Of a DNA stretch of 64,000 nucleotides, positions 4,447 to 39,000 are shown piece after piece. Source of the stretch: Hemiscyllium ocellatum. Lineage: Eukaryota. A model generated the notes under the pieces. That model searched no databases. It was not told where the DNA came from and worked only from the letters and a program-made list of their open reading frames with translations. Each line of letters opens with the position of its first letter. The stretch's first letter is position 1. Location: positions 124,001 to 188,000 of the forward strand of contig NW_026867501.1 of the NCBI RefSeq assembly GCF_020745735.1, given 5' to 3'. Both the position numbers and the translations under genes were made by a program.

Positions 4447-4856
4447 TTTTCGTCATGTCATTTAGATTAGACTTACAGTGTGGAAACAGGCCCTTCGGCC
4501 CAACAAGTCCACACCGACCCGCCGAAGCATGGGCGGCACGGTGGCACAGTGGTTAGCACTGCTGCCTCACAGCGCCTGTAGACCCGGGTTCAATTCCCGA
4601 CTCAGGCGACCGTCTGTGTGGAGTTTGCACGTTCTCCCCGTGTCTGCGTGGGTTTCCTCCGGGTGCTCCGGTTTCCTCCCACAGTCACAAAGATGTGCGG
4701 GTCAGGTGAATTGGCCATGCTAAATTGCCCGTAGAGGTAGGTAAGGGGTAAATGTAGGGGTATGGGTGGGTTGCGCTTCGGCGGGTCGGTGTGGACTTGT
4801 TGGGCCGAAGGGCCTGTTTCCACACTGTAAGTCTAATCTAAATGACATGACGAAAA
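4447..4856. repeat. Perfect 82-bp inverted repeat (4447-4528 / 4775-4856) enclosing the SINE
   Basis: By manual base-by-base comparison, 4447-4528 is the exact reverse complement of 4775-4856, including about 16 bp beyond the SINE tail (AATGACATGACGAAAA). Confidence 0.9.
4531..4841 (+). mobile_element. Full-length tRNA-derived shark SINE (HE1/V-SINE-like)
   Basis: tRNA-like head GGCGGCACGGTGGCACAGTGGTTAGCACTGCTGCCTCACAGC...GGGTTCAATTCCC (A/B boxes), central TCTCCCCGTGTCTGCGTGGGTTTCCTCCGGGTGCTCCGGTTTCCTCCCACAGTC, and a LINE-like 3' tail ending GTCTAATCTAA. Nearly identical to the copies at 10814 and 18382. Confidence 0.9.
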
Positions 4857-6409: not shown

Positions 6410-6790
6410 GCGGGTACACTTCTTCGTTTGATCCTCTGTGTCTGTTTACCTTGTGAGTATCGATCGCAGAAACCAACTTTGCGTGAAATCAAAACTTCAC
6501 TGCTGTCGATTTCGCCCGCATTCCAGCAGAGTCTGCAATTTTAACCATGTTGTGTGTATCAGTTCTAAAGTCCACTCACTTCCCTCTGTTTAAATTCCAG
6601 GTTATTTCAGTCAGTCCGTGACACAGAGCCTAGTAGTGGTGAATAGGAAGGAGTGCCAGTCTCTCACCATCAACTGTGTTTTTAAAAATCATAATTCTTG
6701 TCATTACTTTGAGAGTGAACAATTCTTTCGTCAAACGCAGGCAGCGCAGGGAATGCGAGCGGACAACAAGCGATGGAAGATGTGTTGTGT
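6410..6790 (+). pseudogene. NAR-TCR (IgNAR-like) V: leader exon 6410-6452 plus first, truncated V exon copy 6601-6790
   Basis: Leader reads (A)GTLLRLILCVCLP with a phase-1 GTGAGT donor at 6453 and no ATG (GCG at the expected start). Acceptor TTCCAG at 6600, then YFSQSVTQSLVVVNRKECQSLTINCVFKNHNSCHYFESEQFFRQTQAA. The SLTINCV motif is IgNAR-type. A 1-nt insertion follows and the exon stops after the GGR-equivalent region. Confidence 0.8.
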
Positions 6791-6875
6791 TCAGTCATTC
6801 CAGCAGAATCTGCAATTTTAACCATGTTGTGTTAATGTCCTAATGTCCGCTCACTTCTCTCTGTTTAAATTTCAG

Positions 6876-7193
6876 TCAGTCCGTGACACAGAGCCTAGTA
6901 GTGGTCAACAGGAAGGAGTGCCAGTCTCTCACCATCAACTGTGTTTTGAAAGTCATAATTCTTATCACTATTTTGAGAGTGAATAATTCTTTAGTCAAAC
7001 GCAGGCAGCGACGGAATGGAAGCGGATCACAAGCGGTGGGAGATGTGTTGTGCCCCTGAATAAAGCAAAAAATACATTTTCGTTGTAAATTTGGGATATC
7101 AGAGCTGAAGACACCTCCACCGATTACTGTAATGCTCGATACTGGTCCGGTATATACATTGATGGGCCTCGGCTTCCCGTCGCTCCAAGACTC
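6876..7193 (+). pseudogene. NAR-TCR V, second (complete) exon copy with 23-RSS
   Basis: VTQSLVVVNRKECQSLTINCVL-(frameshift)-FESE*FFSQTQAATEWKRITSGGRCVVPLNKAKNTFSL*IWDIRAEDTSTDYCNARYWSGI. Stops at 6984 and 7086. RSS is TACATTG (7155-7161), a 23-bp spacer, then CCAAGACTC (7185-7193); the heptamer has lost its first C. Confidence 0.85.
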
Positions 7194-7483
7194 TGACGGG
7201 AGACTATTATAGAAAGAAATTGAAAACGGAGGCAATCTATCCAGAAATTCCCACATTGCTGCCTCGCAGCTTCTGTCCCAACGTCTGAGTCATTTTAAAA
7301 AAACATTCTGTGTTTCACAGATGCCAAGTGTGTTCGAATGGTGATCCCGCTGTCAAGACTTGTGTGGATGAATGGAACTGATCACAGTTAAAGGATACTG
7401 ACGTGGGTGGATATCCTGTTCTAACAACTGGAATTGGGAATTTCAGTTCAGCTGTAATGTCCCAAATCTCAACTAGTCTTGGG

Positions 7484-7555
7484 AAGTTTTACACAGATTT
7501 ATGGCACTGTGCCAATTTGGAAGAAAGCACAGTGAAAGGAGCCCGAACAAATAAC
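7484..7555 (+). other. NAR-TCR D segment (core 7512-7527) flanked by 12-bp-spacer RSSs
   Basis: 5' side: degenerate nonamer AAGTTTTAC, 12 bp, CACTGTG (7505-7511). Core CCAATTTGGAAGAAAG. 3' side: CACAGTG (7528-7534), 12 bp, ACAAATAAC (7547-7555). It lies between a 23-RSS V and a 23-RSS J. Confidence 0.8.
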
Positions 7556-7862
7556 TCTGCACAATTAAAATATAAATTCGCCAGCACCAATATCGATTGT
7601 TAGCTTGAAGTTCACTTCGCTGTAATGTCGGCTGATACCTTAACACTCCCTTGCAAGCACATATTTCTTTTTTCGATTCTTCTCATCTGATATGATGTGA
7701 ACATCCACCTTCTGTATTCCAGTGCCATTTGACAGAAGATCAGGTGACCTGAGACAAAGGAAACTTGACCACAGAGAATATTGCCTATCTATCCAAATCT
7801 CATGAAACAATAGTTTGGTCAAGCATCGTGTTAATGATTTTTCGATCGTTTGAGGTACAACT

Positions 7863-7951
7863 GGTCCTTGTATATTGGAGGCTGAGAGGAGCATGATTGT
7901 GTCATTATGATTAAGTAGATGGATCAGGAATGGCCGTGACTGTCACAGCTG
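7863..7951 (+). pseudogene. NAR-TCR J segment (coding 7902-7951) with 23-RSS
   Basis: GGTCCTTGT (7863-7871), 23 bp, GATTGTG (7895-7901), then HYD*VDGSGMAVTVTA (IgNAR-type DGxG instead of F/WGxG), ending in a phase-1 GTAAGT donor at 7952. One in-frame TAA. Confidence 0.85.
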
Positions 7952-8659
7952 GTAAGTGACTCTGCATTCCATCTTGCTCTGATTTATGTTGCTGAACGAT
8001 CGATTTATTGTTATTATCAAAGTAACTAAAGCAAATACTTTAGAAGGAACGGATTCTGTTACAGTGTCCAAGTTGAGAGCAGAATATTCGAGTCAGGTCC
8101 TGATTTCCACAAGCAAAAGAATGAATGACACCTGGCCCTAGGTCGGTGGTTTCACTGCACCTCGGGCATCTCTGGTCTAACAGGTCAATAGAGGGTGACC
8201 ATCAATATGGCGAGCAGGTGCTTAAATGAATGATGAGTACCGACCGTCTGGACTCCATTCCCGGAGTTATCTGTGATCGATGTTGCTCCTTCTGTTGCTT
8301 AGATCACAAGAGAAGGCTCACTGAGCTTTGTACCAGGCAGAACGTCAATCCCAAATTCGAAAAGTTCAACAAAAAACATTGTCCCACCAGAAAATCAGAA
8401 GATTATTCAACGAATTTCAGATACAAGAGACCTGGGTGTAAGTCAAGATGAAGACGTATATTTGAAGAATCGTTGTCAGGAATGATCGACTTGCTATTTA
8501 TTTTCAGTTCATTTCATATGTGCATTCATCTAACCAATCAAGTTCCCATTTTTCCAGCCTCAGGAATGCATGTGAAACTAGAAAGAATGTTTGCTTATTT
8601 AATTTGGTCTTTTGAGACATCGGTTTGCTGTAAACCAAATCTTAAACAAGGAATAAAGC

Positions 8660-10540
8660 GGGATAAAAGGGTTATGAAATAGCTTTAGCAAGCAGAATTA
8701 ATGAGAATGCCAAAGTGCTTTGTTCTTATATAAGAAGCAAGCGAGTAACTAGGGAAAGGATTGGTCCACTAAAGGATAATGAAGTAAGGCTGTGTGCCGA
8801 ACCTGAGAGAATGGCTGAGATTCTGAATGGTTACTTTGCATCAGTGTTCACTGAGGAGAGGAACATGATGCGTCTTGAGATTAGAGATAATTTTTTTATT
8901 AGTCTGGATCACGTTGACATAAGCAGGGAAGATGTGTTGGGTCAGCGAGAGGTTATCAAAGTAGACAAATCCCTAGCACTGGATGGGATCTATCGCAGGT
9001 TGCTGAGGGAGGCGAGAGAGGAAATAGCTGGGGACCTGACATATATCTTTGTGGCATCCTGAAATACAAGTGAGGTACTGGAGGACTGGAAGGTTGATCA
9101 TGCTGTCCCCTTGTACAAGAAGGGTAGTTGGGATATTCTGGTTAACTACAGACCAATGAGCCTGACGTTGGTGGTGGGAAAGTTGCTGCAGAGGATAGTG
9201 AAGGATAGGATCTATTTATATTTAGAAAAGAATGGGCTAATCAGTGACAGGCAACGGGGTTTTGTGCGGGGAGATCGTGCATTACCAAATTAATAGAGTT
9301 CTTCGAGGAAGTGAACAAGTTGATGGATGAACGAACGGCTGTTCATGTCATATACATGGACTTTATTAAGGCGTTTGATAGGGTACGCCATGGTAAACTA
9401 ATAGAGAAAGTGAAGTCACATGGTGTGCATGTGCTCTCGCTAGTTGGATAAAGAACTGGTTGAGCAAAAGGAGACAGAGAGTAGTCGTTGAAGGGAGTTT
9501 CTCGAAATGTAGAAAGCTGACCAATGGAGTTCCACAGGGGTCAGTGTTGAGGTCACTGTTGTTTGTGATGTACATAAATGATCTGGAAGAGGGCACTGTT
9601 GGCATGATCAACAAACTTGCAGATGACACGACGATTTCAGAAGTAGCAGAAAGCATAATGGACTGTCAGAGAATACAGGGGGATACAGATAGGCTGGAGA
9701 GTTGGGCGGAAAGGTGGCAGATGGTGTTCAATGCAAATAAATGTGAGGCGATGAATTTAGGCAAGACTAATTCTCGAGCGAATTCTACAATGAATGGAAG
9801 AGCCTTGGGAAAAGTTGATGAGCAGAGAGATCTGGGAGTGCAGGTCCATTGTACCCTGAAGGTTGCTGCACATGTGGGTAGGGTGGTCAAGAAGGCATAT
9901 AGTATTTTTGCCTTCATTGGACGGGATATTGAGTATAAGAGCTGGCAAGTCATGTTAAAATTGTATAAGATATTGGTTCGGCCGCATTTACAATACTGTG
10001 TACAATTCTGGTCTACACATTAGAAAAGAATGTGGACGCTTTGGCGAGGTTGCAGAGATGGTTTACGAGGATGTTGCCTGGTATGCAAAGTGCTAGCAAT
10101 GAAGAGAGGTTAGGTTTATTTTCATTAGAAAAAAAAAAGATTGAGGGGGGACCTGATAGAGGATTACAAAATCATGAAGGGTATAGACAGGGTGGATAGA
10201 GACAAGCGTTTTCCCAGGCTGAAGGATTCAATAACGAGAGGTCACGCGTTCAAGGTGAGAGGTGGAAAGTTTAAGGGGGTTACACGCGGCAAGTACTTCA
10301 CATAAAGGGTGGTGGGTTTCTGGTACGCGTTGCCAGCAGAAGTAGTAGAGGCAGGCACGGCATATTCATTTAAGATGCGACTGGACAGATGCGTGAGTAG
10401 GTGGGGAGCAAAGGGATACAGATTTTCAGGAATTGACCTTCAGGTTTGGGCAGTACATTTTGAGAGGCTGAGGCTTGAAGGGCGGAAAGACCTGTTTCTA
10501 AGCTGTAAATTTTCTTTGTTCTTGGATTATTTGTCTTCAT
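8660..10540 (+). mobile_element. 5'-truncated, frameshifted CR1 LINE (ORF2 RT region) in the NAR-J to supporting-V intron
   Basis: ORFs 8715-9062, 9111-9293 and 9460-10023 give CR1 RT motifs (NYRPMSLT, GVPQGSVL, YINDL, LADDT, RDLGVQVH, RPHLQYCVQFWS). Confidence 0.92.
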
Positions 10541-10813
10541 AGACTGTCTCCTCAACTGACAGCGCAGCAGTTGTCTCACGAGCTCTGCCTGCCAGTTTGG
10601 TCTGAAAAAGCATTACCCATAAAAGCTGGGACCACTCCATCTGCCTAGCCAATTATTCCAATGGAATAAAGAACGCGTCAACATCATTCTCATCAAAGGG
10701 TTTTGATATGCTGATAACACATTAAAACATCACTGTTGAATCAGTTTCCAAGACATGTTTTGGCACATCATAAGAAGAAAATATGTAAAACAAAACGTCA
10801 CCTCATCACCTCG

Positions 10814-11115
10814 TTAGATTAGATTTAGATTAGACTTACAGTGTGGAAACAGGCCCTTCGGCCCAACAAGTCCACACCGACCCGCCGAAGCGCAACCCAC
10901 CCATACCCCTACATTTACCCCTTACCTAACTCTACGGGCAATTTAGCATGGCCAATTCAACTGACCCGCACATCTTTGGACTGTGGGAGGAAACCGGAGC
11001 ACCTGGAGGAAACCCACGCTGACACGGGGAGAACGTGCAAACTCCACACAGTCAGTGGCCTGAGTCGGGAATTGAACCCAGGTCTCTGGCGCTGTGAGGC
11101 AGCAGTGCTAACCAC
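10814..11115 (-). mobile_element. tRNA-derived shark SINE, head slightly truncated
   Basis: Reverse complement of the 4531-4841 element, with a TTAGA-repeat tail at 10814-10835. Confidence 0.9.
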
Positions 11116-11194
11116 AAGAGAGAACATATCAAAGTATAGCATCAAGAAAATAAACAGAAACATTCCTGTGTTTTGCATTTTCTCCTTTCAACAG

Positions 11195-11581
11195 AGGATG
11201 AATAAGTGATGATGCTGAATGTCATCCTAAATATTCCTGTTCCCTGGTTTCTCGGGGTCGATCCCTACAAATATCTCCTGCCGGTGACACGGTTACTTTA
11301 AGCTGTGATTATTCAGGGATCTGCCCGTATGCAGTTTACTGGTACTGTCAGTCCCTAGGACACTCTCCCAAATACACGATTCAAAGACAGACGTCAGGAG
11401 AGCAGAATAAAGAAAATGGTGAAGGCATACGAATTTCTGCATCCATTGATCCTGCAGTGAAAATCGGTTGGTCAATGATCTCACAAAAACAAGCAAATGA
11501 CTCCTCTATGTATTATTATATACAGAGTCAGCACTCAGCACAGACAGTTGTATGCAGTACGGAGAGAGCTGCACAAAAACC
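11195..11581 (+). pseudogene. Supporting TCR-delta V (STCRdV-like) of the NAR-TCR cassette, leaderless
   Basis: A polypyrimidine acceptor ends 11194/11196. The frame is open from 11202: ISDDAECHPKYSCSLVSRGRSLQISPAGDTVTLSCDYSGICPYAVYWYCQSLGHSPKYTIQRQTSGEQNKENGEGIRISASIDPAVKIGWSMISQKQANDSSMYYYIQSQ. Non-canonical CDR1 Cys at 11322. Second canonical Cys lost (TAT, 11517). RSS is GACAGTT, 23 bp, then a perfect ACAAAAACC (11573-11581). The phase-compatible acceptor gives an immediate TGA at 11199. Confidence 0.82.
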
Positions 11582-13379
11582 TGAACACGCTGGGAATTAC
11601 ACATGGAGTTCACAGATCACTGAGAGAGCTCTCAGATAACCGATAAATTCGATGTCATTCAGTAAAATGGAGCCAAGTGGATGAGCACTGCCTCCACAAA
11701 ACATCTCTCCCTGTGTCATACATGCTCAGTAACGGAATCTACACAATGCACTGCAGAAACATAGAACTTTGGAACATGAGTGAGCTTCGTGGACACTGTG
11801 AATAGATTTTGAATATGACCGAATAATCTTAAATTATTTGAATTATAGATGCGACTCCATCTTTATTCGTGAGTTACCAGACCTCATTATTATCTTGCTG
11901 ATGCCTGTCAACTTAAATGCCATTCTGGCTATGACTCCATTATTACTTCCCCAGGTACTAAATATTACCTTACTCGCTCTATCTCATTCATCATTGTTTT
12001 TTTTTAATTGAAACTAATGTTTATGCCAGTGTCACACGCTTATCGGATTCACACATTCAAAATGTTCTCTCTGGCATATTTTGGTTCTAAGTACGCTCTG
12101 ATATGCTCACTGTTTCAACAGACTCTGGTTGTAATGTATCTAGAACGTGCCTCCTTGATGAACATACTGAGAACACAATTATTAAATGCACGAGATCCTA
12201 CCATTGGTTGTGCAATTGCAATGTTTAAGGAATCAGTTTCTGTCTCTAATTATTTTATAATTTCTGTCATTCCACAGTTATTTTACAAACAGTTCATTTA
12301 TTTATTTCCATGAGACTAGATGGTGAATGAACTAATAGTATGTGTTAATGTTTATGCTTAGTTTCACTGCTTAATTTCTATCATTTTTGCTCACATTATG
12401 TCGCAACTGGTCTCTGTTTGTAATAAGCTACACCACATCTCTGTTTCTATTAAACCAGGCCCTATTTTAGTTGTTCTTTCTCTGCAGCGTGTTGATGGCA
12501 CCATATATTCACATACTATTTATTGGTTTCGATCGTGTGTGAAATCGTTTGGAACCTGGATAAAATGATACGCCATTCTTTTAATATTACAAGACCTCTG
12601 TCCCTCTGAAAACTGTAAATGGTTTAATCTCATTTGCTCATGCACAACGATACGACGCTTCCTGCAATAAATTAACCATGCCTGTGTAGTCGATGAACTT
12701 GGCACTATACTTTGAAGCAAACTTCCAATCACTCCTTAACCTGATGTTTCTCTCGTTACATTAAGTATTGAAAATGGTCAACTGTTTTTGCAGCAGAAAC
12801 GCTCGACAGAACCTTCAGCATTTGAACGCCTTCTTGCATTTGTGATTCATCGGACCAAATGAAGAATTTTTCAGATTCAACGTTACTTAAATTTGCATTT
12901 GATGGTCGGCACAATGTTGAGGTGGTTTGTTTGTTGAATGTGATTTTCCAAACCTTCAACTGTAAATTTATGGAAACGTTGAAAAAATGTTAAAATATTA
13001 GGCACTAAAACACATATAAGTGAAGCCAACGATGAAGTAAATTGACGCTTAAAATGAAGAAAAATCTGGGAAATGGCAGAAATGGGAAGAAGAAAGAGGC
13101 TCAACTAAGTATTTACCAGCAGCGGAATCAGTACTGAAAGACTCAACAACATATTTTGTGCATTGTGAGCCTGTCCCCGAAGGGAAATACAGTTATTCGC
13201 CTTGTTGGAAGGCATGAGCAGTGACGTAATCTCTTTGTTCAAAGAAATGTAAGTAAGCTGTGTGCTGTACCTTAATTGTCCCTCTTGCGACTATCACTCT
13301 GAATAAATGAGGGGCCATTTGAATATGTCGCAGAGCAACCCTCCACAGCGACAACAACTCCTGCAGTTTCTGAACGAAG

Positions 13380-15550
13380 ATGCATGAGGCAGTCATTGCC
13401 CCCTTCTTTGTAATTTGCTATTCAATTCTCGCTGCTGTTGGTGGCCCTGGTAAGTCACTGATTCTCGAAAAAATCGATTACCTTATCATGTATTTCCAGT
13501 TTATTTCCTTTCCTTCCAGGATTTGGTAGAATCTTTCCAATATGCAACTGTTAATTTTAAGGACCTTCAGTGGGTCTCTAATCTATATAATAAATTAGGA
13601 AATAACATCTGTGCTCTGAAAAATAATCGTAAATTACTTCCAATTTCATTATAACGAAGGGAATTGTGCTCTTCAATTTTGCATGCTGTGCAGTTATAGA
13701 AAAAAGTAACTATGAGACGCTGAACTGAAATTTGTGGTGAATGACAATGCATGAACGTTAATGTGTAATATTGTCACAGACTAAGGTCCAGCCCAATTCG
13801 GTGAAATGCAATTTAGTTGATTGTAGGATGAATTGTTTATCACCGTGTCAGAATTTATACTATGTGCTCTGGAATGATGTAATCGGGTATTGAGTTCCCA
13901 ATGGACGATAACATTGTTTTGTTCAAATGAACGTCATAAGAAAAGAGCAGAAACCGAGCTGCTCAGGAGAATGTTCCATCAATTTGGGGACGGTGGGGTG
14001 GGGTTTACTCAATACACCTATAATCAACACAATTCGCGATATTAATTTGAGGAAGGAACAGAAGATAAAATAAGTTAACATGAGATTTCAGACAGATGTA
14101 TGATGTTACGGGAATGACCAGATGCTGGTGCTTCAGAAAAATTGAAGCATGTGATTGTGAAGGGTGAGACACCACTGGTGAGCAGCCGAAGTCGGTCAAT
14201 ATTTATGGATTAAAGGTTGGCTATGCTTGCTATGAATAATTTCATGACAACCACATTATGCTGTTTATCCCGAATTGAACAATAGCTCCTGGCCTTAACT
14301 CAGTGACAGGAGAGCGATGTTTATTCCTGAGCTGATCACACTGACAGTTGATGTGGAGATGCGGTGTTGGGTTGGAGTGGAGAAAGACAAAACTGACATG
14401 ACCCCAGGTTATAGCCCAATGGGTTTACTTGAAATAACAAGAATTTGAAGTGCTATTCCTTCGTCAGGTGCATTGACAGATATTTGATGCTGCATGTGTT
14501 GAACAACACTTGACAGTTATTTCAAAACAGGCAGAGACTCGGGTTGGCAGGTTTATGTTCAAAGACTGTTTCATAAAAAAAAATGCATATGTCAACAGCC
14601 GGTGCTTTGACTAATTCATTACTGTCACTCTCTTTTGATTTATCACAGCCAACTTGCTGGCGATCATAATTCTATCTCATGGAAGATGCGGTCTCTCCCG
14701 ATGCATCACCTACTACCTGGTGGCAATTGCGGTGAGTGACTTCCTTGTCATCACCAACGCAGTTATCCTCAATCGAATCAGCCGCTTCTATTTTCGGCAA
14801 AGTGTCTTGTCCACCACTCCTGTGTGCACTCTCAGTGTCATATTGGTCTATGCTACACTCGACTGTTCGGTCTGGCTGACAGTCGCCTTTACCATCGACC
14901 GTTTTGTGGCCATCTGCTATCAGAGACTGAAGACAAGATACTGCACCAAGAAAACTGCATCGCTCGTTATTGGAATGATCTGTGTCCTGAGTTGCATCAA
15001 GAACGCTCCTTTCTACCTTGCATTCCAGCCCTTGTTCATTTTGGACGGGATACCCTGGTTTTGTAACGTCAAAGCAAACTTCTATACCTGGCCAGTCTGG
15101 CAGTTTCATGATTGGTTGTTTCGGGTCTTGAACCCTTTTCTCCCGTTCTCCCTCATTCTGTTGCTCAACGTCCTGACCATAAGACACATCCTAGCGGCCA
15201 ACAGGGCCCGCAGGAGGCTCTGTGGTGCTGCTAAGGGACAAGATCCAGAGATGGCTAATCGCCAGAGGTCCATTGCCTTACTTTTTGCCATCTCTTTAAG
15301 CTTCCTACTCATGTGGTCTCCTCTTCTCGTACATTTTATATATGTGCGGATTAAAGATGAGAGTTACTTTAGTGGGCTGGATTTCAGTGATCCGTTGTAT
15401 ACCTTTGAAGAGACGACCAACACACTCCAGATACTTAGTTCTTGCAACAACGTCTTCATCTATATGGTCTCTCAGAACTTGTTTCGAAAGCAGATGAAGA
15501 AAATTCTAATATACCCCTTTGTCACCCTCGCCAGGTCCTTTAAACGATGA
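13380..15550 (+). CDS. Intact two-exon class A orphan GPCR (GPR139-like family expanded in cartilaginous fish), about 323 aa; exons 13380-13449 and 14649-15550
   Basis: Exon 1 reads MHEAVIAPFFVICYSILAAVGGP with a phase-1 GTAAGT donor at 13450. Acceptor CACAG at 14648, then (A)NLLAIIILSHGRCGLSRC... with seven hydrophobic segments, TM2 LVAIAVSDF, TM3 TIDRFVAIC, TM7 SCNNVFIY, and TGA at 15548. ATTAAA lies near 15585. Confidence 0.88.
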
Positions 15551-18049: not shown

Positions 18050-19760
18050 TGGTAGTCACTATTCCAGCTAAATTCCAGGAGAGGAAGTCACACACGGCTA
18101 GAGATGCACATGGACAACAGGGCACCACGTTATGGCCGAAGTAGGACATGGATAAAGAAGGCATTGATTCGGAAAGTGCAGACCAGCTAAACTCACTGAT
18201 GGATAAAATCTATAATGCAATTCTGAGAGATTCGAGTAATGCGCACTTGCACAGGTAGGGATTATTTAAGAACAGACAGCATTGTGCTCTGAAGGGAAAC
18301 ACGTGACTGACCAACATGATTGAGGTTTTCGAATAGGTGACCGGGAGTGCTGATGAGGAGAATGCATTTGACAGACACTACTTAGATTACTTACAGTGTG
18401 GAAACAGGCCCTTCGGCCCAACAAGTCCACACCGACCCGCCGAAGCGCAACCCACCCATACATTTACCCCTTACCTAACATTACGGGCAATTTAGCATGG
18501 CCAATTCACCTGACCCGCACATCTTTGGACTGTGAGGAGGAAACCGGAGCACCCGGAGGAAATCCACGCAGACACGGGGAGAATGTGCAAACTCCACACA
18601 GTCAGTCGCCTGAGGCGGGAATTGAACCCGGGTCTCTGACGCTGTGAGGCAGCAGTGCTAACCACTGTGCCACCGTGCTGCCCAAATGGAATGAAACTTA
18701 CACCGAAGCATGGCTTTCAACAAGTTCCCTCGTGAGAGATTGATAGAAAGAAAAAAATCCCAGGGGAGGCAAAGATAAAAGCCAATGGAATATAGGGAAA
18801 TTGAAGTATTTGTTTTCCGAGTCCGGAGAAAAATAAGAAGAATACACTAATGGTTTGGAGCTGATTTTTTCTTTTCTGACCAGAAACCTGTGTTCAGTTG
18901 AATTCCACAGTGTTGTAGACCTTTCTCTTGTGGTTTATATTTTAAAACTTCAAACAGAAACTTTGGCCGTGTTGTTTAGTAAGTTCGTGGATGATATGAA
19001 GATCTAAATTTTGATGAATAGTGAAGAAGCTCGTCTTCGATTCCAGGAGGAGATCGACGGGTACATCAGGTTAGCTGATCATAGGCAAATTGAATTATGT
19101 CCAACAACTATGAAATTATCGATGTAACAGGACAAACAAGCAAAGGAACACATGACGAACTATAGAACATTAAGAAGCTCTGCCTACCACAAGGGTTTAA
19201 GAGTGTATATCCAATGGTCCCTCAAGGTAGTAGGACAAGGTACAATGGCAACTGAGAATCTTGACTTCAGTAGATGAATCATCGCGTTTACAGTGGGGAA
19301 GTAATGGTGGAACTGTGTAAGATTGTGTTCGAATGCAACTATATTATTGTGTCCAGGTCTTTAATCCAAGTTTTAAGAGAGATTGTCTTGCACTCCAGAG
19401 GATTGAGAGGAGACCTGCATATGTGAATTGAGTTCAAGTATTTTAGTCATGAAAAGAGCATGGAAAGACTAAGCTTGTTTTCCGTGCAGCAAAGGAGACT
19501 GGTGGGAAGGAGTAATTGAAAATTTAAAAATTTTGAAAGGCATAGATTTAGATAAGGAGCAGGATGTTCAGAGGAGATAAGAGTAATTTTAGGTCAGCCA
19601 GAGGGTTTGCGAATCTGCAAGTCACTGTCTTAAGTTTGGTAGAGATACAAAACAAAATGACAATATTTGAGATTTTCTCAGATGTGGAATTGCGATGCCA
19701 AGCCATAGAAGGCAATTGGTAAAGAGTTCAAAGATGAGATTAGATTAATTAAATTCTACT
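18050..19760 (+). mobile_element. Old, highly decayed CR1 LINE interrupted by a SINE
   Basis: Nucleotide similarity to the CR1 RT region at 9200-10400 runs on both sides of the SINE at 18382-18683. Many stops. Confidence 0.6.
18382..18683 (-). mobile_element. Full-length tRNA-derived shark SINE
   Basis: Reverse complement of the 4531-4841 element, including the full head (CCACTGTGCCACCGTGCTGCCC). Confidence 0.9.
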
Positions 19761-21320: not shown

Positions 21321-21527
21321 AGGGCCCTGCAGAGTTACCTCCATCCCACCACATGGTAACCGTTTCAAAGCAGACGGCGTTGGCGATCGATTTTCTGCAT
21401 TTCTGCATGTTTTGAACCGTGAGGGGGATGTCACCATCAGCGAACTGTGGCTGTCCGACTGGTCGGTGTATTTCTGCAGGCTGTGAGACACAATGACAGG
21501 AGCCAGAATGATCCTTGTGCCAAACAT
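21321..21527 (+). pseudogene. 5'-truncated TCR alpha/delta V relic (FR2 end to RSS)
   Basis: RALQSYLHPTT-(frameshift)-GNRFKADGVGDRFSAFLHVLNREGDVTISELWLSDWSVYFCRL*, then heptamer CACAATG (21489-21495), 23 bp, and a degenerate nonamer GCCAAACAT. No FR1 or leader found upstream. Confidence 0.75.
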
Positions 21528-21827: not shown

Positions 21828-22278
21828 AGGTTCAGAACAGTGGCGTCAGTCAGCTGTGGTTCAAAAAGTTGTAGCCGCACAGTCCAATCAGATTTATTGC
21901 TTGTCACTGAGAAACGATTCGGTGGAGATTTTCTGCATTGCCACTAAAGCTATTCTCATGTACCAAATACTCAATGGATCCACTTGAATATTGAAGATCC
22001 CAGAACACGTAAGGCAATTGTTGCTTGTCACTGTGTAATTACGGAATAATTGAACATCATGTCCTTCATTTACTGAGGTTTCCGCCGGTGTCTGTTAAAC
22101 TGAGTCAGCTTGACAATGCCCTGTTAAAGAAAAGACACATAAGAAGTCAAAGAATTATATATCACTGTGATTTCTCCCCAGAAACAATTGAACAAATGCG
22201 ACACTTACTTGTCAAATAATGTACAAGCACATATAGAAACATATGAAGGACGACATGTTCTCCAACGAATAATTTCAT
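21828..22278 (-). pseudogene. TCR alpha/delta V pseudogene, minus strand, 3' end lost
   Basis: Leader MKLFVGEHVVLHMFLYVLVHYLT (22278-22209) with a GTAAGT donor. Acceptor TTTAACAG at 22121, then HCQADSV*QTPAETSVNEGHDVQLFRNYTVTSNN-(fs)-PYVFWDLQYSSGSIEYLVHENSFSGNAENL-(fs)-NRFSVTSNKSDWTVRLQLFEPQLTDATV. YYC and RSS are replaced by a LINE-tail relic. Homologous to the V at 44784-45199. Confidence 0.8.
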
Positions 22279-22920
22279 CTGCTTTAGTGCACTTTTGGTG
22301 CCATCTTTGATGTCCTTTACTCCACCTGCGTTGTAAAGCAAAATTAATATACACCTGGTGTTTATCATATGTAACATATAGTTCCCTGTGATGAGCCTGA
22401 TCCATGAACGATTCAGCAAAAACTTGCAGCTGGCGTATGCAATTTACTTTAGAGACGAATTGAGGAAGGTTCCAACTCTTTTCTTTTTAGATCAATACGT
22501 GGAGATTTCTGTGCTCTGATTAATTGTCATAACTGCGACATTTGTGAAATGAAGTCATGAACAAATTCTCAACTTACCATCTAAGACAGCTGTAGCAGAA
22601 ACATTAAAATAAAAATAAACTCCTAATATGTTTCGAGAGAAATGATGGAAGATTTGAACACAAATGAGTTATTTCTGAATTGATTATTCGTCATGAGATA
22701 AGATGGCATATCGATATTGTGCTCTCTACTGATTGGTTTCTTATGCCAGAGACAGAAGGTAACGTCCAATCAGGTTGGAAATCCATTGTTTTGCAAAAAA
22801 AAACCAATGAGCTCTTCGGTTTTACTGCTGCATTTCTCTTTGTGCGAAATTGTATCACGTGGTGCGGCAGAAGGACATTGCCTCCTATCCAGAGAAAACC
22901 CGAGATATGCATTTTCTCTC

Positions 22921-25900
22921 TGAAATGAGGACTGCAGATGCTGTAGATCAAAGTCAAGTTTAGAGTGGTGCTGAAAAGCACAGCAGGTCAGGCAGCAAAA
23001 TCAACATTTTGGGCATAAGCCCTTCATCAGGTAAAAGGCTAGGAGCCTCCAGAGTGGAGAGATAAATGGGAGGGGGCGGGGGTGAGGAGAATGCACCTAA
23101 GAGTACAATAGTTGGACGGAGGTGGGGATGAAGATGATATGTCGGAGAAGAGGGTGGAGCAGATAAGTGTGAAGGAAGATTCGCAGGTAGGAAAGGTCAT
23201 GAGGATGGTGAAGAGATGTGAAGTTGGAATTGGGTACGGTGGGGGAAGGGAAATGAGGAAACTGGTGAAGTCCACAATGATGCCCTGAGGTCGAAGTGTT
23301 CTGTGGTGGAAAATGAGGCGTTCTTCCTCCAGGCGCCAAGCAGTGAGGGAGTGGCGGTGGAAGAGGCCCAGGATCTGCATGTCCACGGCAGAGTCGTGGA
23401 GGGGCGTAGAAATTTTCGGCCACGGGGCCGTCGGGCTGATTGGTGCCAGTGTTCCGGAGATGTTCCCTTCAGTGCACTGCAACAAGGCGTCCAGTCTCTC
23501 CAATGTAAAGGAGCCCACACCTTTGGAGCCTTGGATGGAGGTGAGGGGACCGTGTGGGCGCAGGTTTTGCAATTCCTGCGGTGGCAGCGGAAGATACCAG
23601 GAGGGGAGGGTGCCTTACGTGGGGCACGAACCTGACCAGGTTGTCACAGAGGCAATGGTCCTTGCGAAAGGTGGATAGAAATGGCGAGGGAAATGTATCC
23701 CTGGCGGTGAGGTCTATTTGTAGGTGGCAGAAATGTCGGCGAATGATGCGGGTAATGCGGAGATTGGTGGAGTGGACGTTGAGGACCTGGGGGTTCAGTC
23801 CTTGTTGCGGTTTGAGGGATGGGCTTTGAAGGCGGAGGTGCAAAACGTTGATGAGATGCGTTAGAGGGTATCTTAGACCATGTCGGAGGAGAACTTACAG
23901 TCTTTAAAGAAGGAGGCCATCTGGTGTTCTCTGTGGTGGAACGGATACAGAGAAGGCAGAGGAATTGGGAACACGAGTTAGCATGGGAAGAGGTGAAATC
24001 CAGTTAGCTGTGGGAGTCGATGGGTTTGTAAAAATATGTCACTTTTGAATTGATCGTCATTAATGGAGTGGTCGAGGTCTAGGAAGGGGAGGGAGGTGTA
24101 CAGATTGTGCACGTTAATTTAAAGTCGAGGTGGAATGTGTTGGTGAAGTTGATGAAATGCTGAACCCTCTCACGGGAGCACGAAGTGGCACTGATGCAGC
24201 CATCAATGTAGTAGAGGAAGAGGTGGGGAGTGGTGCCAGTGTAACTACGGCTGATGGACTGTTCTACATAACCAACAAAGAGACAAGCATAGTTGGGGTC
24301 CAGGCGGGTGTCCACTGATACCTCTTTCATCTAGAGGAAGTGGGAGCATTCGATTGAGAAAATGTTAAGTGGGAGGGCCAATTCAGCCAAACGAATGAGA
24401 GTGTCAGCGGAAGGGAACTGGTGGGTACCTCTGGAGAGGAAGAAACGGAGGGCTTGGATGCCTACTCATGGCGGGTGGATGTCCATAGTGACGATGAGGC
24501 GTTGGGAGCTGGGAAAATGGAAGTCTTGGTGGAAGTGGTGGGCTTGGGTGTTGTATCGAACGTACGTGGGGAGTTCCTGGACTAGGGAGATAGGACAGTA
24601 TTGAGGTAGGTGGAGAAGAGTTCGGTGGGGCAGGAGTAGGCTGAGACGATTGGTCGGCTGGGGTGGTCAGGCTGGTGGATATTCGGAAGGAGGTAGAATT
24701 GCTCACTGCGAGGTTTCCAAAATCTGAGTTTGGAAGCTGTGGGTGGGAGACCTCCTGATGTGATGAGGTTATGTATGGTCTGGGAGATGATGGTTTGAAG
24801 TTGGGGGGTGAGGTCTTGATCGAGGGAGCAGCAGGAGGAGGTGCCTTTGAGTTGGGGCCTGGCTTCATTGGTGTAGTTGTCAGTGCACCCCCTTTATCAG
24901 CTGGTTTGATGATGAGATTGGGATTGCAGCAGAGGGAGTCGAGACTTTGCGTTGGGAGGGCGTGAGTTTCGAGTGAGGGAGGAGGCAGATAGGTTGAGAC
25001 GGTAAATGTCTCGGTGGCAGATGGAAAGGAAAAGATCGAGTGTAGGTAATAGGCCAGTATGGCGCGTCCAGTGGATGGTCTGTGTTGGACGTGAATGAAG
25101 GGGTCCTCGGAAGGTGGGCAGGCATCCTGATTGAAAACATAAGCACGGAGGCGGAGGCAGTGGAAGAAGTGTTTGACGTTCCAACGAGGATTGAATTCGT
25201 TGATGGAAGGACAGAAGGGGATGAAGGTAAGGCCTTTGCTCTGGACTTATCGCTCATCCTCAGTGAGCGGGAGATCTGAATGGATAGTAAAAAGTCGGCA
25301 GGGCTCGGAGCTAGGACCTGGTATAGGTATGGCACAGGGAGTGGGGTCAGAGACTGTAAATGGAGTGGGAGAGGTGGTGGGGAGATGGGGGTATCATTAC
25401 CAAAGATGATCTTTCCCTCATGCTTCTTGGATGCGGAGATTGTGACAGTGGGATATGTAGGGGGCGTGTCGGCAGTATGCAAGTGAATGGCGTTGGTGAG
25501 GGCACAAGTGTTAGCAACGACTGAAGTTGGGGGCAGAAGTAGCGGAACGTGTGACGTCAGCGTAGAATGGAGGGACGGAAGTGATGTCACGCATGTTGTA
25601 TTTGGAATGTTTGGGGGCAGAAGTGACTCCAGAAGCGGCCGCGTTTGGGGCGGAAGTGACGTCATCGATCACCGTGGGTTGGGTGCCTCGTGGGTAATGG
25701 AGGGCAACCATGTCAGGAGGTCGAGTGAAGCTGCTGGAAAGTTTGAGGAATGCTGGTTATGGAGGTGGGTATATAAAGGTTGGCTGTGCTTACAGTTTTA
25801 TTGATATTTGAGATGTTGCAGAAAATCTGATTGTTGAGAGTATGCCTTATTCTTAGGATATGTTCCAGAAGGGGCCCTTTGCAGTTCTGACAGTGTGGCC

Positions 25901-26705
25901 CTCAGTGGAGGCACAGCTCACTGTACAGAGGTTAGGTGGTGGCACATGGTTGCGAGTGTTGAGTGGAGAATCCTGAAGGAAAACCATTGTTGATATTTTC
26001 AGTCTGTACTGGTTGTCCTGTTGGGATCTAAACTGTGCTGGTTTGAATGTAGTTCGGTTTTCATGTGGGATCCGTTGGTTCTGGAGGCAAACACTGAGGA
26101 GACCGATGTAGCTGTGGTCTCGAGTCTGTTTCAGGACATGGTTGAAGAGCTTCAGGGCAGAGGAAATGATCTGGGGGTTGAAGTAAGAGAGAGACTCACT
26201 GAGATCTTTGTAGAGAGAGGGGAACTTCTTCAAGGACGGCATCCTTGCAAGAGGATTCGCACTAAGATTAAAATCAACTTGGCGAAAGTGAGGACTGCAG
26301 ATGCTGGAGATCAGAGTCAAGATTAGATTGGTGCTGGAAAAGCACAGCAGGTCAGGCAGCATCCGTGGAGCAGGAAAACCGGCGTTTTGGGCAAAAGCTC
26401 TTCAGCAGGAATGAGGCTGGAAGCGTTTGGTGTGGAGAAATAGATGTGAGGGGGTTGGGGTTGAGGAGAAGGTAACTAACAGTCCAATACGTGGATGGAG
26501 GTGAGGATGAAGGTGATAGGTCGGAGAGGAGGGTGGAACAGATCAATTGGAAGGAAGATTAGCAGGTAGGGCAGGTCATGAGGATAATGCTGAGTTGGAA
26601 GGTTGGAACTCAGGTAAGGTGGGGGAGGGGAAATAAGGAATCTGGTAAAGTCCACATTGATGGTCTGGGTTTGAGGCCTTCAAAACTGGAAGATGAGCCG
26701 TCTTC
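22921..26705 (-). mobile_element. Near full-length decayed Penelope-like retroelement with direct pseudo-LTR repeats
   Basis: Minus-strand RT motifs (PNYACLFVGYVEQS...LFLYYIDGC...FINFTNTFH) and GIY-YIG (LLYIGETGR). About 400-bp diverged direct repeats at 22921-23330 and 26285-26705 (GAGGACTGCAGATGCTG...AGCACAGCAGGTCAGGCAGC). Confidence 0.85.
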
Positions 26706-28091: not shown

Positions 28092-28523
28092 ATGTTCCTC
28101 CCGTACTCCTTACTAATAATAGTGGTGGTGCTGCGTGGTAAGTCTATGTTTAAGCATGCAATATCTCCTACACGAGTGATGTTCCCTCCGAGACATTCGA
28201 TATATTTGTCTTTTTGCAGGAACTAATGGCGAAGATGCAGTTTTCCAAGATCCACACGAAGTAATGGTCCTGGAGCGAGAGAATATAACATTGAATTGCA
28301 GCTACTCGACATCTTCTTTTAAAGCTCTGTTCTGGTACATTCAGCATCCTGGGGATGAACCGAGATATTTCGTGAAAATATACAGCACGGGGAAGGTAGA
28401 AAGGTCTAAAGAATTTCAAGACAGATTCTCTGCTGTTTTGAACAGGCAAAGCCAGACGTTTTCTTTAAAAGTCTCTCCAGTTCTTCTCACCGATAGCGTC
28501 ATGTATTTCTGTGCCATGGAGCC
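28092..28523 (+). CDS. Apparently functional TCR alpha/delta V segment (leader 28092-28137, V exon 28220-28523)
   Basis: MFLPYSLLIIVVVLR|G with a GTAAGT donor, an 82-bp intron and a TTGCAG acceptor, then TNGEDAVFQDPHEVMVLERENITLNCSYSTSSFKALFWYIQHPGDEPRYFVKIYSTGKVERSKEFQDRFSAVLNRQSQTFSLKVSPVLLTDSVMYFCAME. Both Cys and Trp intact. Confidence 0.93.
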
Positions 28524-28561
28524 CACACTGCTGCAGATATCGTCGTCCCTGCACAAAAACC
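28524..28561 (+). promoter_or_regulatory. V RSS (22-bp spacer)
   Basis: CACACTG, 22 bp, ACAAAAACC. Confidence 0.9.
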
Positions 28562-34907: not shown

Positions 34908-35335
34908 ATGAACATAAAGACCTGCAATGATCTTTTTCCAGTTGGTGCTCTGATGTTCTTGATATTTTGTGAGTTTGTTTTTCTAATCAGATGCCGTGTT
35001 TTATCAATATTATAATACCTCCTGATTTTTGATTGACATTTCTTCCATTACAGCATCCCAGTGTGCGGATCAGATCTCACATGTATATGAGGTAGTGTCA
35101 AAGGAAGGGGAGCAGGTTGAATTGGACTGTCAGCTTGCCGTTAGTTCGACAGAAAGAGTAGCCTGGTACAGACAAACACTGATAGGGGCTCCGACATTTA
35201 TCGGGTCCATATATCAGGGCAATGAATCTAAAGGTCGCTACATGCTGTCCTTAGACCGAGTGAAGAAGTTCAACATCATCTCAATTGATGATACCGTGGT
35301 CGAGGACGCCGTAATATATTACTGTGCGATGTAAG
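34908..35335 (+). CDS. Probably functional TCR alpha/delta V segment (leader 34908-34968, V exon 35054-35335)
   Basis: MNIKTCNDLFPVGALMFLIF with a phase-1 GTGAGT donor and a TTACAG acceptor, then SSQCADQISHVYEVVSKEGEQVELDCQLAVSSTERVAWYRQTLIGAPTFIGSIYQGNESKGRYMLSLDRVKKFNIISIDDTVVEDAVIYYCAM followed by TAA G. RSS is CACAGTT (35336-35342), 23 bp, ACAATATCT (35366-35374). Confidence 0.88.
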
Positions 35336-35603
35336 CACAGTTAGACAATGTGTGAATCCCATTGCACAATATCTTGGCGGTTCCATGTCTCTGCTGCCAT
35401 GTTTAACTTTATACTTGTGTTGAGTATTACGCATGATAAAGCTATTTCAGAACGTTTTTTCCTGTTACTGTAGGGTGAAGCTACAAAATCTTATTAACTA
35501 TTACTCCAGACAAGTATGGGAAGGGCCATCAATCGATGTTCTCTCTTCTGTTGTGTTATATTTAAAGTTGAATGGCAGACAGAAAAACAGCTTTGCCTTT
35601 AAT

Positions 35604-36024
35604 ATGCCACGACAGAGAGAAATGCTTATTTCACTGACACTTTATTTAGTTCTCGTTAAAGAAACGTTAAGTTGACTTTGTAAACTTCTGATCTTGTTTT
35701 GCAGCTATTCCTTGCCAGTCAGAAGGAGTCCTGATATCTATTTATCAGGGAATAGTCGGACAAAACATTTCACTCCAACACACCGTTACTATTTCCACGA
35801 ATGACTTTGTGGTCTGGTACAGACAGCTCTCCAAACAAGCTCCCGAGTACCTCGTCTCAACATTCAGGGATGAAAGAATTGAAGGAAGATTTAAAGTATC
35901 TGTGGACAGTGAGAAAGGCTCCACCACTCTGGCTGTTAACACAGTTGAGCTGTCAGACACCGCGGTCTATTACAGTGCAGTCAGACACAGTGAAACAAAA
36001 AGAGCATGAGGCTGTACAACAACC
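35604..36024 (+). pseudogene. TCR alpha/delta V with open V exon but both canonical cysteines lost and no usable leader intron
   Basis: The V exon from 35705 reads IPCQSEGVLISIYQGIVGQNISLQHTVTISTNDFVVWYRQLSKQAPEYLVSTFRDERIEGRFKVSVDSEKGSTTLAVNTVELSDTAVYYSAVR (first Cys now H, second now S). RSS is CACAGTG (35986-35992), 23 bp, ACAACAACC. For leader MLISLTLYLVLVKETL the only phase-1 GT leaves a 34-bp intron. Confidence 0.85.
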
Positions 36025-39000
36025 TATCCGGCCTGAGGATTGAGGTGATCACAAGAGAGCAGTCTGCTGAAATAAAAGCAAAGCAAGAAAAAACTTTCAA
36101 ATTAGTTTAAAGAAAATTAAATCGCAACAATAGCCAGTTCAGTTTTTATTTTCATTATTTTATACATAATCAGATCAGACCAGAATAAAATATCTCTGTA
36201 TTTTATCGGAGCTGTGTTTCTTTGTAAATCTTTGCTGCAGAAGTCATCCTAGAGTTTCTCCTGTAGCTGTTTCCTATTCCACGTTCCCAAACTCTTTTGC
36301 TTGGGACAGCACAGGGAAAGATGTATTTTCTTCTTCATCAATCCATGTTGACTGTGGAAAAAAACAATTCAGAAGGGAGATTTGTTTTTATTCATTCTCT
36401 ATTGTACATAAAAGTTTCTGATAGGACAGTGAAGATGGACATTTTCTCAGTTCCAAACCTAACATGTTGTTGCTTGATACGATCCAGCTTTGTTGATTTT
36501 CGAAATTATAGAAAGTAAATTTATGAGGATTATCAATATACAAACAAAAATATACAGCACCTTGAATCATGGAATTGTTGAATTTTCATTGTGGTCCTCA
36601 TAATTATAACTTGACAAATTTCAAGCTTTCGTTTCTAAATCAATATTCAGTAACTATGCAGGGCACATTATTGGTCTGAAGCTAATCTGTTTCACTTAAA
36701 AGAGCAGTCTTCGTGATCTAATTCAGCAATTCAGGAACTCAGACAAGTCATCGCAGAATTAAATGCAAATTACATAAACAAAACATATGATAGGAATAAA
36801 TCACGTCAATTATATAAGTCATCGTTGCAATAGCAATATGAATGATTTGATGAAATAATAACCAATCGAAGCCATACAGCAATATTTGAGAAAAAAAAAT
36901 AGAATCAATGCTAAAACATCAGAAATCCACTTAATGACAGTGCAGTAGATTTGCTGTGAACATAATTTACAGAACTGTCAGTTTACCCGTGCCCCAGCTG
37001 ACACCTGGGCATTACAGGAAATACATTTATGCCATCCTTCACTTTGTACGATGCTTTAGTTTGGTGCAGGAACTTTGCACAACATATTCGTGTGTAGGAC
37101 ATAAGAGGGTAACGAAGAAAGGAACTTTTTTGAATAAATGCATGTGTGTGCAAATAGACAGCTGCTGTGAAAAAAAAGAATTAACATCTTCTTCATCAGC
37201 ATTCGCTCCCCGAGATGTCATAAGCATGTGCCAATCATTTTATAGACAGACGTAATTGGCCAATAAAGTGAATTATTTTCAATATACCCAGGCTACCACA
37301 ACCCTTTAGTGTGACACTGATAGGTCATTCAATTTCTGGGCGTGATCCAAAGACGTGCAGAAGGAAACGAAACAGTGTTGACAATTTATTCCGATCTGAT
37401 AATAAGTGTAACTGAACCAAATACAGTTAAAACAAAAACGTATCTAACTTCATCAAGACAGACTTATTAACAGATAGTTGAATGCAGGAAGAGAAATGAA
37501 CCAAAGTAACTCAAATCGAGAACATCTAATGTAATATAATGAGTGTCAAAGTCAAGTCATATATAAACATTGACTCTATCTGGTATAGTATTAACGTTAT
37601 TAGTAAGTTTACATAATGTAATGGAAGTAATTATGCGATCCCATATTGCAATAACTTTATGACTCAGTGACCCGATGAACAGAAAGGGAGATAGATCCTT
37701 GTGTGATCATCATTGAGGCCAAACGAGTAGAATTCTGCTGACGAGATACAGAACCTGAAGAGCCATCGCAATATCTGCACCATCTAAGGTTAATCTGGCG
37801 ATTAAAGAGATACAAACAATTGAAAATACAATCTGTTCCTTAAATAATAAAATACGATGCAAGGACATCTGTCTTTAATGCACGAAGGTGTGGGTGCATG
37901 GATTATTCAGGTTTAAACAAAAAGCAGTGTTTGTTGATACACCAACACTGAACGAAGCTAACTTGAAAGTTGAGGAGACAGAGAATTGTTAAACACTTAT
38001 CAGGGCCTGACTGGCAAGGGCAAAATCATGCCGACAAATCATGAAGGCAAGCATAGGTTCAATGCTGATTGGAACCTGGTAAGACTCTGATACAGTTAAT
38101 AAATTCTGAAATTATTATGGCGCCAATATCACCACGGGCAGTTAAAAGACAGAACACCCTCTGTAACTGTTGGAGACGAGCGATTGCACAATAATAGTCA
38201 GGGCCTGGTGAAAACTAATGCAGGCAGAGTCCAGAGAATTCATGTATTAAATCAGGCCTGTCTCACTATTAATGAGGGTGCATATTTCATTGACAACTTA
38301 ACACACACGAGTTTCGCAGCAAATCCGAGTCAAAAGGCATCATTTTTCAGTATACTCCATATGCAACTCTGAATCTGCCAGATGGAGATAAGTTGTTCAA
38401 CATGTAAAATGTGCCCTCTTTTTTCATACAGGCATATAGCAATGCTTAAGAACGCTTAATCCGGTGCATATTACGAAAGTGAAGGAATGATCACGATGAT
38501 GAAACATTAAAGAGCGCAGAAAATCGATGCAGGAGGCAAGTGCGAACTGATTGTCTTCATCCTTACCCGGAATTTTGAATCGACAATCATCTTGGCCTTC
38601 TCCGAAATCCCAGCATTACACCAAGGTTTTATGCAAATCCAGCAAGATTCCTTTGCTGTTGCATTCAATCCATTATGTAATGAAGTTCCAACTACTGACC
38701 CACTTGCATCCTTCACCAGCACGCTGGCTTATTGTGAGGCCTAAAGCAGGAGTCTCGCATGGCTATATTCATCGCACTTCTGATACTTCATATTTTGAAA
38801 AATATTCTGCTGTTTGTGTTTCTGACCAATGTGGATAACATCACAATTAATCGAATGATATATCATCTGCAATGCTCATTCCGATATAGAGAGGAGGTGA
38901 TCGTGCTGGCCTTGGTGGACAAAGTTCAAAACCACACAACTCCAAGTTATAGTCCAACAAATTTATCAGGATGTATAAATTCTCCCCTTCGTCTGGTAGC

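Follow-up and report, generated by a model that had tools for sequence, protein, structure and literature searches.

The locus considered here raises the question of which kind of antigen receptor its two unlike variable (V) segments once served, and what has become of the unit to which they belong. It occupies positions 6410-11581 of a 64,000-nucleotide stretch of Hemiscyllium ocellatum DNA (contig NW_026867501.1; 'the window' below means this whole stretch). A doubly rearranging T-cell receptor (TCR) delta of cartilaginous fish, NAR-TcR, was reportedly described by Criscitiello, Saltis and Flajnik in 2006. The system has been summarised (PMC1845163, PMC12227049, PMC3457774), and its marks are given by Venkatesh et al. 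2007 (PMC1845163): the NAR-TcR V is equipped with a leader, has a Cys in its a-b loop and lacks the Trp of the WYRK motif, and the associated V-delta lacks a leader and has a conserved Cys in the first complementarity-determining region (CDR1). We are confident that the locus represents a pseudogene of such a doubly rearranging NAR-TcR delta cassette, situated in a shark TCR alpha/delta V array. The kind of system is already known, and the cassette is a real but ordinary pseudogene, whose homology, anatomy and individual lesions were all observed directly.

Relationship to NAR-TcR and IgNAR

The downstream V segment was searched exhaustively against 1.84 billion representative proteins, which yielded 31 hits with E <=1e-10. 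The top 13 shark matches (E 3.6e-30 to 4.7e-19) were two-V proteins, and in the best of these the aligned region begins around 130 residues in, after an N-terminal NAR-type V domain. The matched RefSeq models originate from six sharks (Mustelus asterias, Hemiscyllium ocellatum, Heterodontus francisci, Rhincodon typus, Chiloscyllium plagiosum and Cetorhinus maximus) and most of them are labelled 'uncharacterized protein'. Comparison of one of them, P0006 (385 aa), with solved structures showed residues 19-126 to be VNAR-like and residues 144-383 to correspond to a TCR-delta V-C, which identifies the protein as a complete NAR-TcR delta chain. The supporting V, as the downstream segment is called hereafter, gave no matches in a word-indexed protein search, probably owing to length limits.

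In a tblastn comparison of the NAR-TcR models P0001-P0013 with the window, the first domain fell on 6594-6758 and 6847-7169 (44-68% identity, E down to 9e-24) and the second domain on 11223-11630 (48-59% identity over the V exon, E down to 5e-37). Both V exons thus lie on the matching domains of the RefSeq models, as the initial annotation of this DNA had led us to expect. The remaining V segments of the window reached only 21-41% identity with the same models. Self-comparison at the DNA level revealed no second NAR-TcR cassette elsewhere in the 64-kb window, and tblastn with the NAR-TcR models found no C-delta in the window.

Four short contigs, L001-L004, served as germline references. L002 and L004 are metagenome contigs with shark DNA that carry the leader exon, and L001 is a metagenome contig with a germline supporting V, its acceptor and an array of five signal units. 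Short contigs were found in a word-indexed search with the NAR V of P0003; L003 is Chiloscyllium punctatum BEZZ01070165.1 (1785 bp; protein P0154) and contains an intact V exon, the V signal, a 16-nt D between perfect heptamers, a J, a donor and 650 nt of intron. It is collinear with window 6848-8603 (1.78 kb), with V, signal, D, J, donor and intron in the same order and with equal D length, spacer lengths and donor. The identity amounts to 82% for the V exon, 77% for the V-D spacer, 82% for the D with its signals, 77% for the D-J spacer, 83% for the J with its signal and 75% for the intron. L003 differs from the window in that its V is open, its heptamer is a perfect CACAGTG and its J is free of stops. 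Judged by its sequence it is probably a paralogous cassette, since the identity is too low for a confident ortholog. The parts of the cassette that emerge from these comparisons are the following:

6410..6452, + strand: relic of the leader exon belonging to the NAR-TcR V (aligned at the DNA level with L002 and L004; its peptide matches P0003 residues 2-29)
6519..7058, + strand: tandemly duplicated units 1 (6519-6795) and 2 (6796-7058) (self-BLAST, MAFFT)
6601..6795, + strand: NAR V exon copy 1, framework region (FR) 1 to the start of FR3 (tblastn E 2e-14 to 9e-07 against NAR-TcR models)
6871..7154, + strand: copy 2 of the NAR V exon, full length (tblastn E as low as 9e-24)
7155..7193, + strand: relic of the NAR V 23-spacer signal (collinear alignment with L003)
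7484..7555, + strand: D segment (D at 7512-27, 16 nt) with 12-spacer signals on either side (pattern search, L003 alignment)
7863..7951, + strand: J segment with its signal (translation, L003 alignment)
7952..11232, + strand: 3281-nt intron separating the NAR J from the supporting V (L003 homology at its start; acceptor compared with L001)
~8650-10540: reverse-transcriptase fragment of a long interspersed nuclear element (LINE) in the intron (RVT_1, E 3e-10 and 5e-04)
10823-11115, + strand: short interspersed nuclear element (SINE) in the intron (two further copies in the window are 96% and 93% identical to it)
11233..11538, + strand: leaderless supporting V-delta exon (Pfam V-set E 6.6e-08; tblastn E 1e-25 to 5e-37)
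11539..11700, + strand: relics of the signals that follow the supporting V (aligned with the array of five units in L001)

The locus shares with NAR-TcR the gene order of a leader exon (here a relic), a NAR-type V, a D, a J with a donor and a leaderless supporting V-delta with a 23-spacer signal, as well as the Cys in the a-b loop, the lack of a Trp in FR2, the Cys in CDR1 of the supporting V and the setting among TCR alpha/delta V segments. All four diagnostic states of PMC1845163 were seen in the window alignments, with the leader present as a relic that lacks its ATG. The proposal of the initial annotation that a complete NAR-TcR cassette is present (leader, NAR-type V, one D, one J with donor, intron and leaderless supporting V-delta) is thereby upheld, tblastn, the collinearity with L003 and the diagnostic residues being in agreement. 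In comparison with NAR-TcR, the cassette of the window lacks a start codon, contains frameshifts and stops, has broken V heptamers and has lost both the acceptor and Cys104 of the supporting V. In addition, the 5' half of its NAR V is present twice, owing to a 277-bp internal tandem duplication, and its intron has been enlarged by the LINE fragment and the SINE.

The IgNAR V (VNAR structures such as 8hgi_C, 7fbj_B and 2i26_N) likewise has a short V fold without a conventional CDR2 and the SLTINC sequence in FR1, and among solved structures the VNARs come closest to the first domain of NAR-TcR. The locus might thus be imagined as the relic of an IgNAR cluster, a V-D-J without constant exons, that came to lie by chance upstream of an unrelated TCR V pseudogene. 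The solved structures nearest to the V pieces are indeed IgNAR V domains, but the resemblance is weak: copy 1 alone gave E ~1 and 13 bits, with VNARs as the top five of 6 matches, whereas the V pieces score 52-83 bits against the first domains of NAR-TcR. Pfam gave no match for the short pieces of the NAR V. In the weak PDB alignment the window shows E-C where the VNARs show G-E, and F-F where these show W-Y; the presence of the a-b loop Cys and the absence of the FR2 Trp are therefore NAR-TcR states and not IgNAR ones. An IgNAR V is furthermore characterised by an FR2 Trp, the lack of an a-b loop Cys and a position in clusters with three D segments and their own constant exons, none of which was seen here; only a single D-like element is present. 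The downstream V is 48-59% identical to the supporting V of NAR-TcR and shares with it the CDR1 Cys, the position of the acceptor and the signal array. The ten longest of the open stretches sampled from the J (7.95 kb) to 17.6 kb contained no Ig-like constant open reading frame, a V-set exon being present there instead. The initial annotation had named two findings that would speak against its proposal, Ig constant exons downstream and a leader before the supporting V, and neither was made. Given the diagnostic residues, the single D, the lack of constant exons and the specific homology of the downstream V, we ruled out an IgNAR cluster, which we regard as very improbable, and likewise rejected a chance pairing of an orphan NAR V with an ordinary V-delta.

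Segments of the cassette and their lesions

Considering the NAR-TcR pseudogene from its 5' end, the leader peptide is homologous to that of the references (GTLLRLILCVCLP) and its GT donor at 6453-54 is intact. Positions 6410-12 read GCG where intact copies show ATG, and no replacement in-frame ATG occurs upstream of the leader, back to the stop at 6362.

The NAR V that follows is present in one partial and one full-length copy. The initial annotation located the motifs SLTINCV, ITSGGR, NTFSL, DYC and RKECQ correctly, but it assumed a single V exon and overlooked the duplication, RKECQ having been taken from copy 1 and ITSGGR, NTFSL and DYC from copy 2. The duplicated unit of 277 bp takes in the 3' portion of the leader intron together with some 190 nt at the 5' end of the V exon, from FR1 as far as the beginning of FR3, and the two units are 86% identical with gaps according to self-BLAST and 89.4% identical over 263 aligned nt according to MAFFT. 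RKECQ, with its a-b loop Cys, occurs in both copies (Cys codons 6654-56 and 6919-21). FR2 lacks the canonical Trp, reading FFRQ in copy 1 and FFSQ in copy 2, and 12 of the 13 references have FF[RK]Q/R at this place (P0012 has LLKE). Relative to every reference, both copies share three derived states, namely Leu for Pro in FR1, Glu for Gly before FR2 and GRC for GRF, which are therefore older than the duplication. The lesions that destroy the frame, by comparison, are each confined to one of the two copies. Copy 1 has retained its AG acceptor (6599-6600) and suffered a +1 frameshift by an insertion near 6747-6750. In copy 2 the acceptor was removed by a 10-bp deletion immediately upstream, one T is missing from the run at 6944-47, which causes a -1 frameshift, and TAA stops are found at 6984-86 (CAA in copy 1) and at 7086-88 (GAA in L003); its Cys104 codon is at 7128-30, in a YYC that has changed to DYC. 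The duplication by itself need not have been lethal, as splicing of the leader to the second acceptor would give a normal V. Unequal crossing-over between neighbouring cassettes was considered as its origin and rejected, because it would yield a single hybrid V and not the head-to-tail repeat that is observed.

Since the two units have diverged by 10.6%, the duplication must be old and is no artefact of assembly. This bears on a further explanation, namely that the cassette is functional and that the lesions reflect errors of assembly or sequencing. The frameshifts are single-base changes and one of them lies in the T run at 6944-47, a typical error site, which would suit such errors. Nevertheless, at least ten independent lesions of varied kinds were found, including substitutions (ATG to GCG, TAA twice in the V and once in the J, and TGT to TAT) and changes in length (the 10-bp deletion, a 4-bp duplication and the 277-bp duplication), and collapsed or erroneous assemblies do not yield diverged copies of a repeat. 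We consider a functional cassette obscured by such errors hardly conceivable.

The signal of the NAR V reads TACATTG-23-CCAAGACTC, where intact L003 has CACAGTG-23-CAAAAACTC; the spacer has 20 of 23 bases in common with L003, in one unbroken run. By contrast with this signal, the heptamers of the D are both perfect (CACTGTG at 7505-11 and CACAGTG at 7528-34). The 64-kb window contains a single instance of the pattern CACTGTG-N16-CACAGTG, which was absent from all of 100 shuffles. The 3' signal of the D is CACAGTG-12-ACAAATAAC, and its 5' nonamer is weak, equally so in the intact L003. The J is preceded by the nonamer GGTCCTTGT at 7863-71, a 23-nt spacer and the heptamer GATTGTG at 7895-7901 (CACAATC on the other strand; the counterpart in L003 is CACAGCA). 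Its coding part, 7902-7951, encodes VDGSGMAVTVTA and is interrupted by an in-frame TAA at 7912-14, where L003 has CAT. The donor is intact, with G|GTAAGT at 7951/7952, its GT at 7952-53 and a phase of 1. The D (7512-7527) and the J (7902-7951, GT at 7952) are accordingly where the initial annotation had put them. The private D and J carry compatible signals, and the spacer layout V(23)-(12)D(12)-(23)J with V-delta(23) was rightly described, being the same as in the intact L003.

The first ~650 nt of the intron are homologous to the intron of L003. At its 3' end the acceptor of the supporting V, at 11231-32, has been mutated from AG to AT, the window reading CCTAAAT|ATTCC and L001 CCTGCAG|ATTCC. 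A supporting V with an acceptor and without an adjacent leader had been proposed; there is indeed no leader between the SINE and the V, but the acceptor that had been assigned to 11195/11197 is not homologous to the true one. We rejected the former because the CAG at 11192-94 has no counterpart in L001 and a phase-1 reading from 11195 or 11197 immediately meets TAA or TGA. The AG at 11203-04 was rejected as well, as the wrong frame follows it. In the reference proteins the J (..VT.TA or similar) directly precedes the start of the supporting V in 10 of 10 cases, and this start has the form D-S-x-S in 8 of 10. Such a direct junction of the J with the supporting V fits an exon start at 11233.

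The supporting V matched many antibody and TCR V chains in the PDB. Its Cys23 is encoded at 11304-06 and its CDR1 Cys at 11322-24, within SGICPY (SG[FLI]CQY in the references). The pair of non-canonical Cys residues recognised earlier, in RKECQ (6645-6659) of the NAR V and in GICPY of the supporting V, is therefore genuine. Cys104 has been lost, TGT having become TAT (Tyr) at 11517-19. In two of the reference models, P0008 and P0013, the supporting V reads NWEYSG where the other references have SCEYSG, so that Cys23 is lost, and P0008 ends in YYA rather than YYC; NAR-TcR pseudogenes are therefore probably present among the gene models of other sharks as well.

Behind the supporting V the first signal unit (11539-81) ends in a perfect nonamer (ACAAAAACC at 11573-81), and a 4-bp duplication of ACAG has split its heptamer, which can be read as CACAGAC with a 27-nt spacer or as GACAGTT with a 23-nt spacer. 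With the TACATTG of the NAR V, this agrees with the observation in the initial annotation that the heptamers of both V signals are broken. One to two further decayed signal units of ~60 nt follow after 11581. In a repeat search this decayed array showed up as a single 12-nt repeat pair at 60-nt spacing, and it was not detected by Tandem Repeats Finder. In L001, at ~560-860, the supporting V is followed by five head-to-tail units of ~61 nt, each with the order heptamer-23-nonamer.

Function of an intact unit and failure of this one

According to the literature (PMC12227049, PMC5931798, PMC3457774), an intact unit goes through two independent V(D)J joins and two splices to give a three-domain delta chain. 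In such a unit RAG would join the NAR V, with its 23-spacer signal, to the private D (12/12) and J (23), and a separate RAG joining would connect the leaderless V-delta (23) to the D-delta and J-delta of the locus. Transcription would begin at the NAR leader, a phase-1 splice would link the NAR J donor with the acceptor of the supporting V, and the supporting V would in turn be spliced on to C-delta. The product would be a three-domain chain, in which the a-b loop Cys of the NAR V is thought to be bonded to the CDR1 Cys of the supporting V. In the copy described here, the start of translation, the frame, both V signals and the splice between the two V exons have all failed. The tally comprises two frameshifts, three stops, a lost start codon, a lost Cys104 and two V heptamers without CAC in register. 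We infer that this decay followed the loss of selection on the whole unit; a joint loss of constraint is expected, because neither half makes a protein without the other.

A number of observations weigh against the view that the cassette is a pseudogene that was lost as a unit, or limit how far it can be taken. The supporting V contains no stop or frameshift over 306 nt and its frame is open from 11233 past its signal. It breaks 14 of 49 conserved columns, compared with 4-15 for the references, and copy 2 of the NAR V breaks 6 of 33, compared with 0-9, so that both lie in the range spanned by the more divergent references. The signals of the D and the J look usable on the basis of their sequence, and residual sterile transcription or D-J joining is possible. 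Moreover, the mechanism of the intact unit rests on secondary citations of the original description. In view of the discrete lesions and the only moderate missense decay, the term 'fully decayed' that had been applied to the cassette is overstated. The statement that every coding part is broken also goes too far, considering the open frame of the supporting V, the intact D with both its heptamers and a J signal that is no worse than that of the intact L003.

The uneven distribution of the lesions leads to another explanation, in which the two halves died separately: the NAR V-D-J was lost first, and the supporting V remained under selection for longer, for example because it could be spliced to the rearranged NAR VDJ of an upstream cassette, before losing its acceptor, Cys104 and signal. 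Five frame-destroying lesions fall within the ~461 coding nt of the two NAR V copies and none within the 306 nt of the supporting V, where ~3.3 would be expected at the rate of the NAR V; the Poisson probability of finding none, calculated by hand, is ~0.04, or ~0.07 when the acceptor deletion is left out. As the test is post hoc and the counts are very small, these values give a weak hint. The supporting V, besides, is hardly pristine, core positions being among the 14 conserved columns that it already breaks, and long-range splicing between cassettes is undocumented in the literature used here. We consider separate death of this kind unlikely and retain the decay of the NAR-TcR cassette as a whole. 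With limited likelihood the cassette may still serve in thymocytes as a non-productive RAG substrate for D-to-J joining, because the D has kept two perfect heptamers and the J signal is as good as that of an intact copy, and the lesions, taken with the open supporting V, could also reflect a decay of the NAR V and supporting V halves at different times.

Surroundings and significance

Outside the cassette, further V-set segments and copies of the SINE were recorded in the window:

~21355-21525, 28204-28536, 34963-35385 and 35725-36027, + strand: other V-set segments
45100-44720 and 48614-48300, - strand: other V-set segments
10823-11115 (+), 4549-4843 (-), 18382-18665 (+) and 4460-4528 (+): young SINE family, copies 93-96% identical

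Several of the other V-set segments are followed by 22/23-spacer signals, such as CACACTG-22-ACAAAAACC at 28524-61 and CACAGTG-23-ACAACAACC at 35986-36024. The occurrence of V-set segments in both orientations with signals of this type fits a TCR alpha/delta V array. Between TCR V segments, at 14639-15547 (+), there is an open frame of 303 residues with similarity to the rhodopsin family (7tm_1, E 1.3e-22). The SINE pair at 4460-4843 is inverted and gives rise to matches to the consensus of a recombination signal at 4482 and 4821, which are probably spurious. The region 22000-26000 has a raised G+C content (up to 0.51) and a strong skew of G over C (up to 0.45); Tandem Repeats Finder reported no tandem repeat there at a score of >=80.

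With this locus the NAR-TcR cassette family of a hemiscylliid shark gains an annotated pseudogene, including a base-by-base list of its failures. The locus can be of use in the annotation of such loci, as units of this kind are fused or missed by gene predictors and intact ones appear in RefSeq as 'uncharacterized protein'. Knowledge of how NAR-TcR works remains unchanged, and the finding bears on the birth-and-death evolution of these cassettes as blocks.

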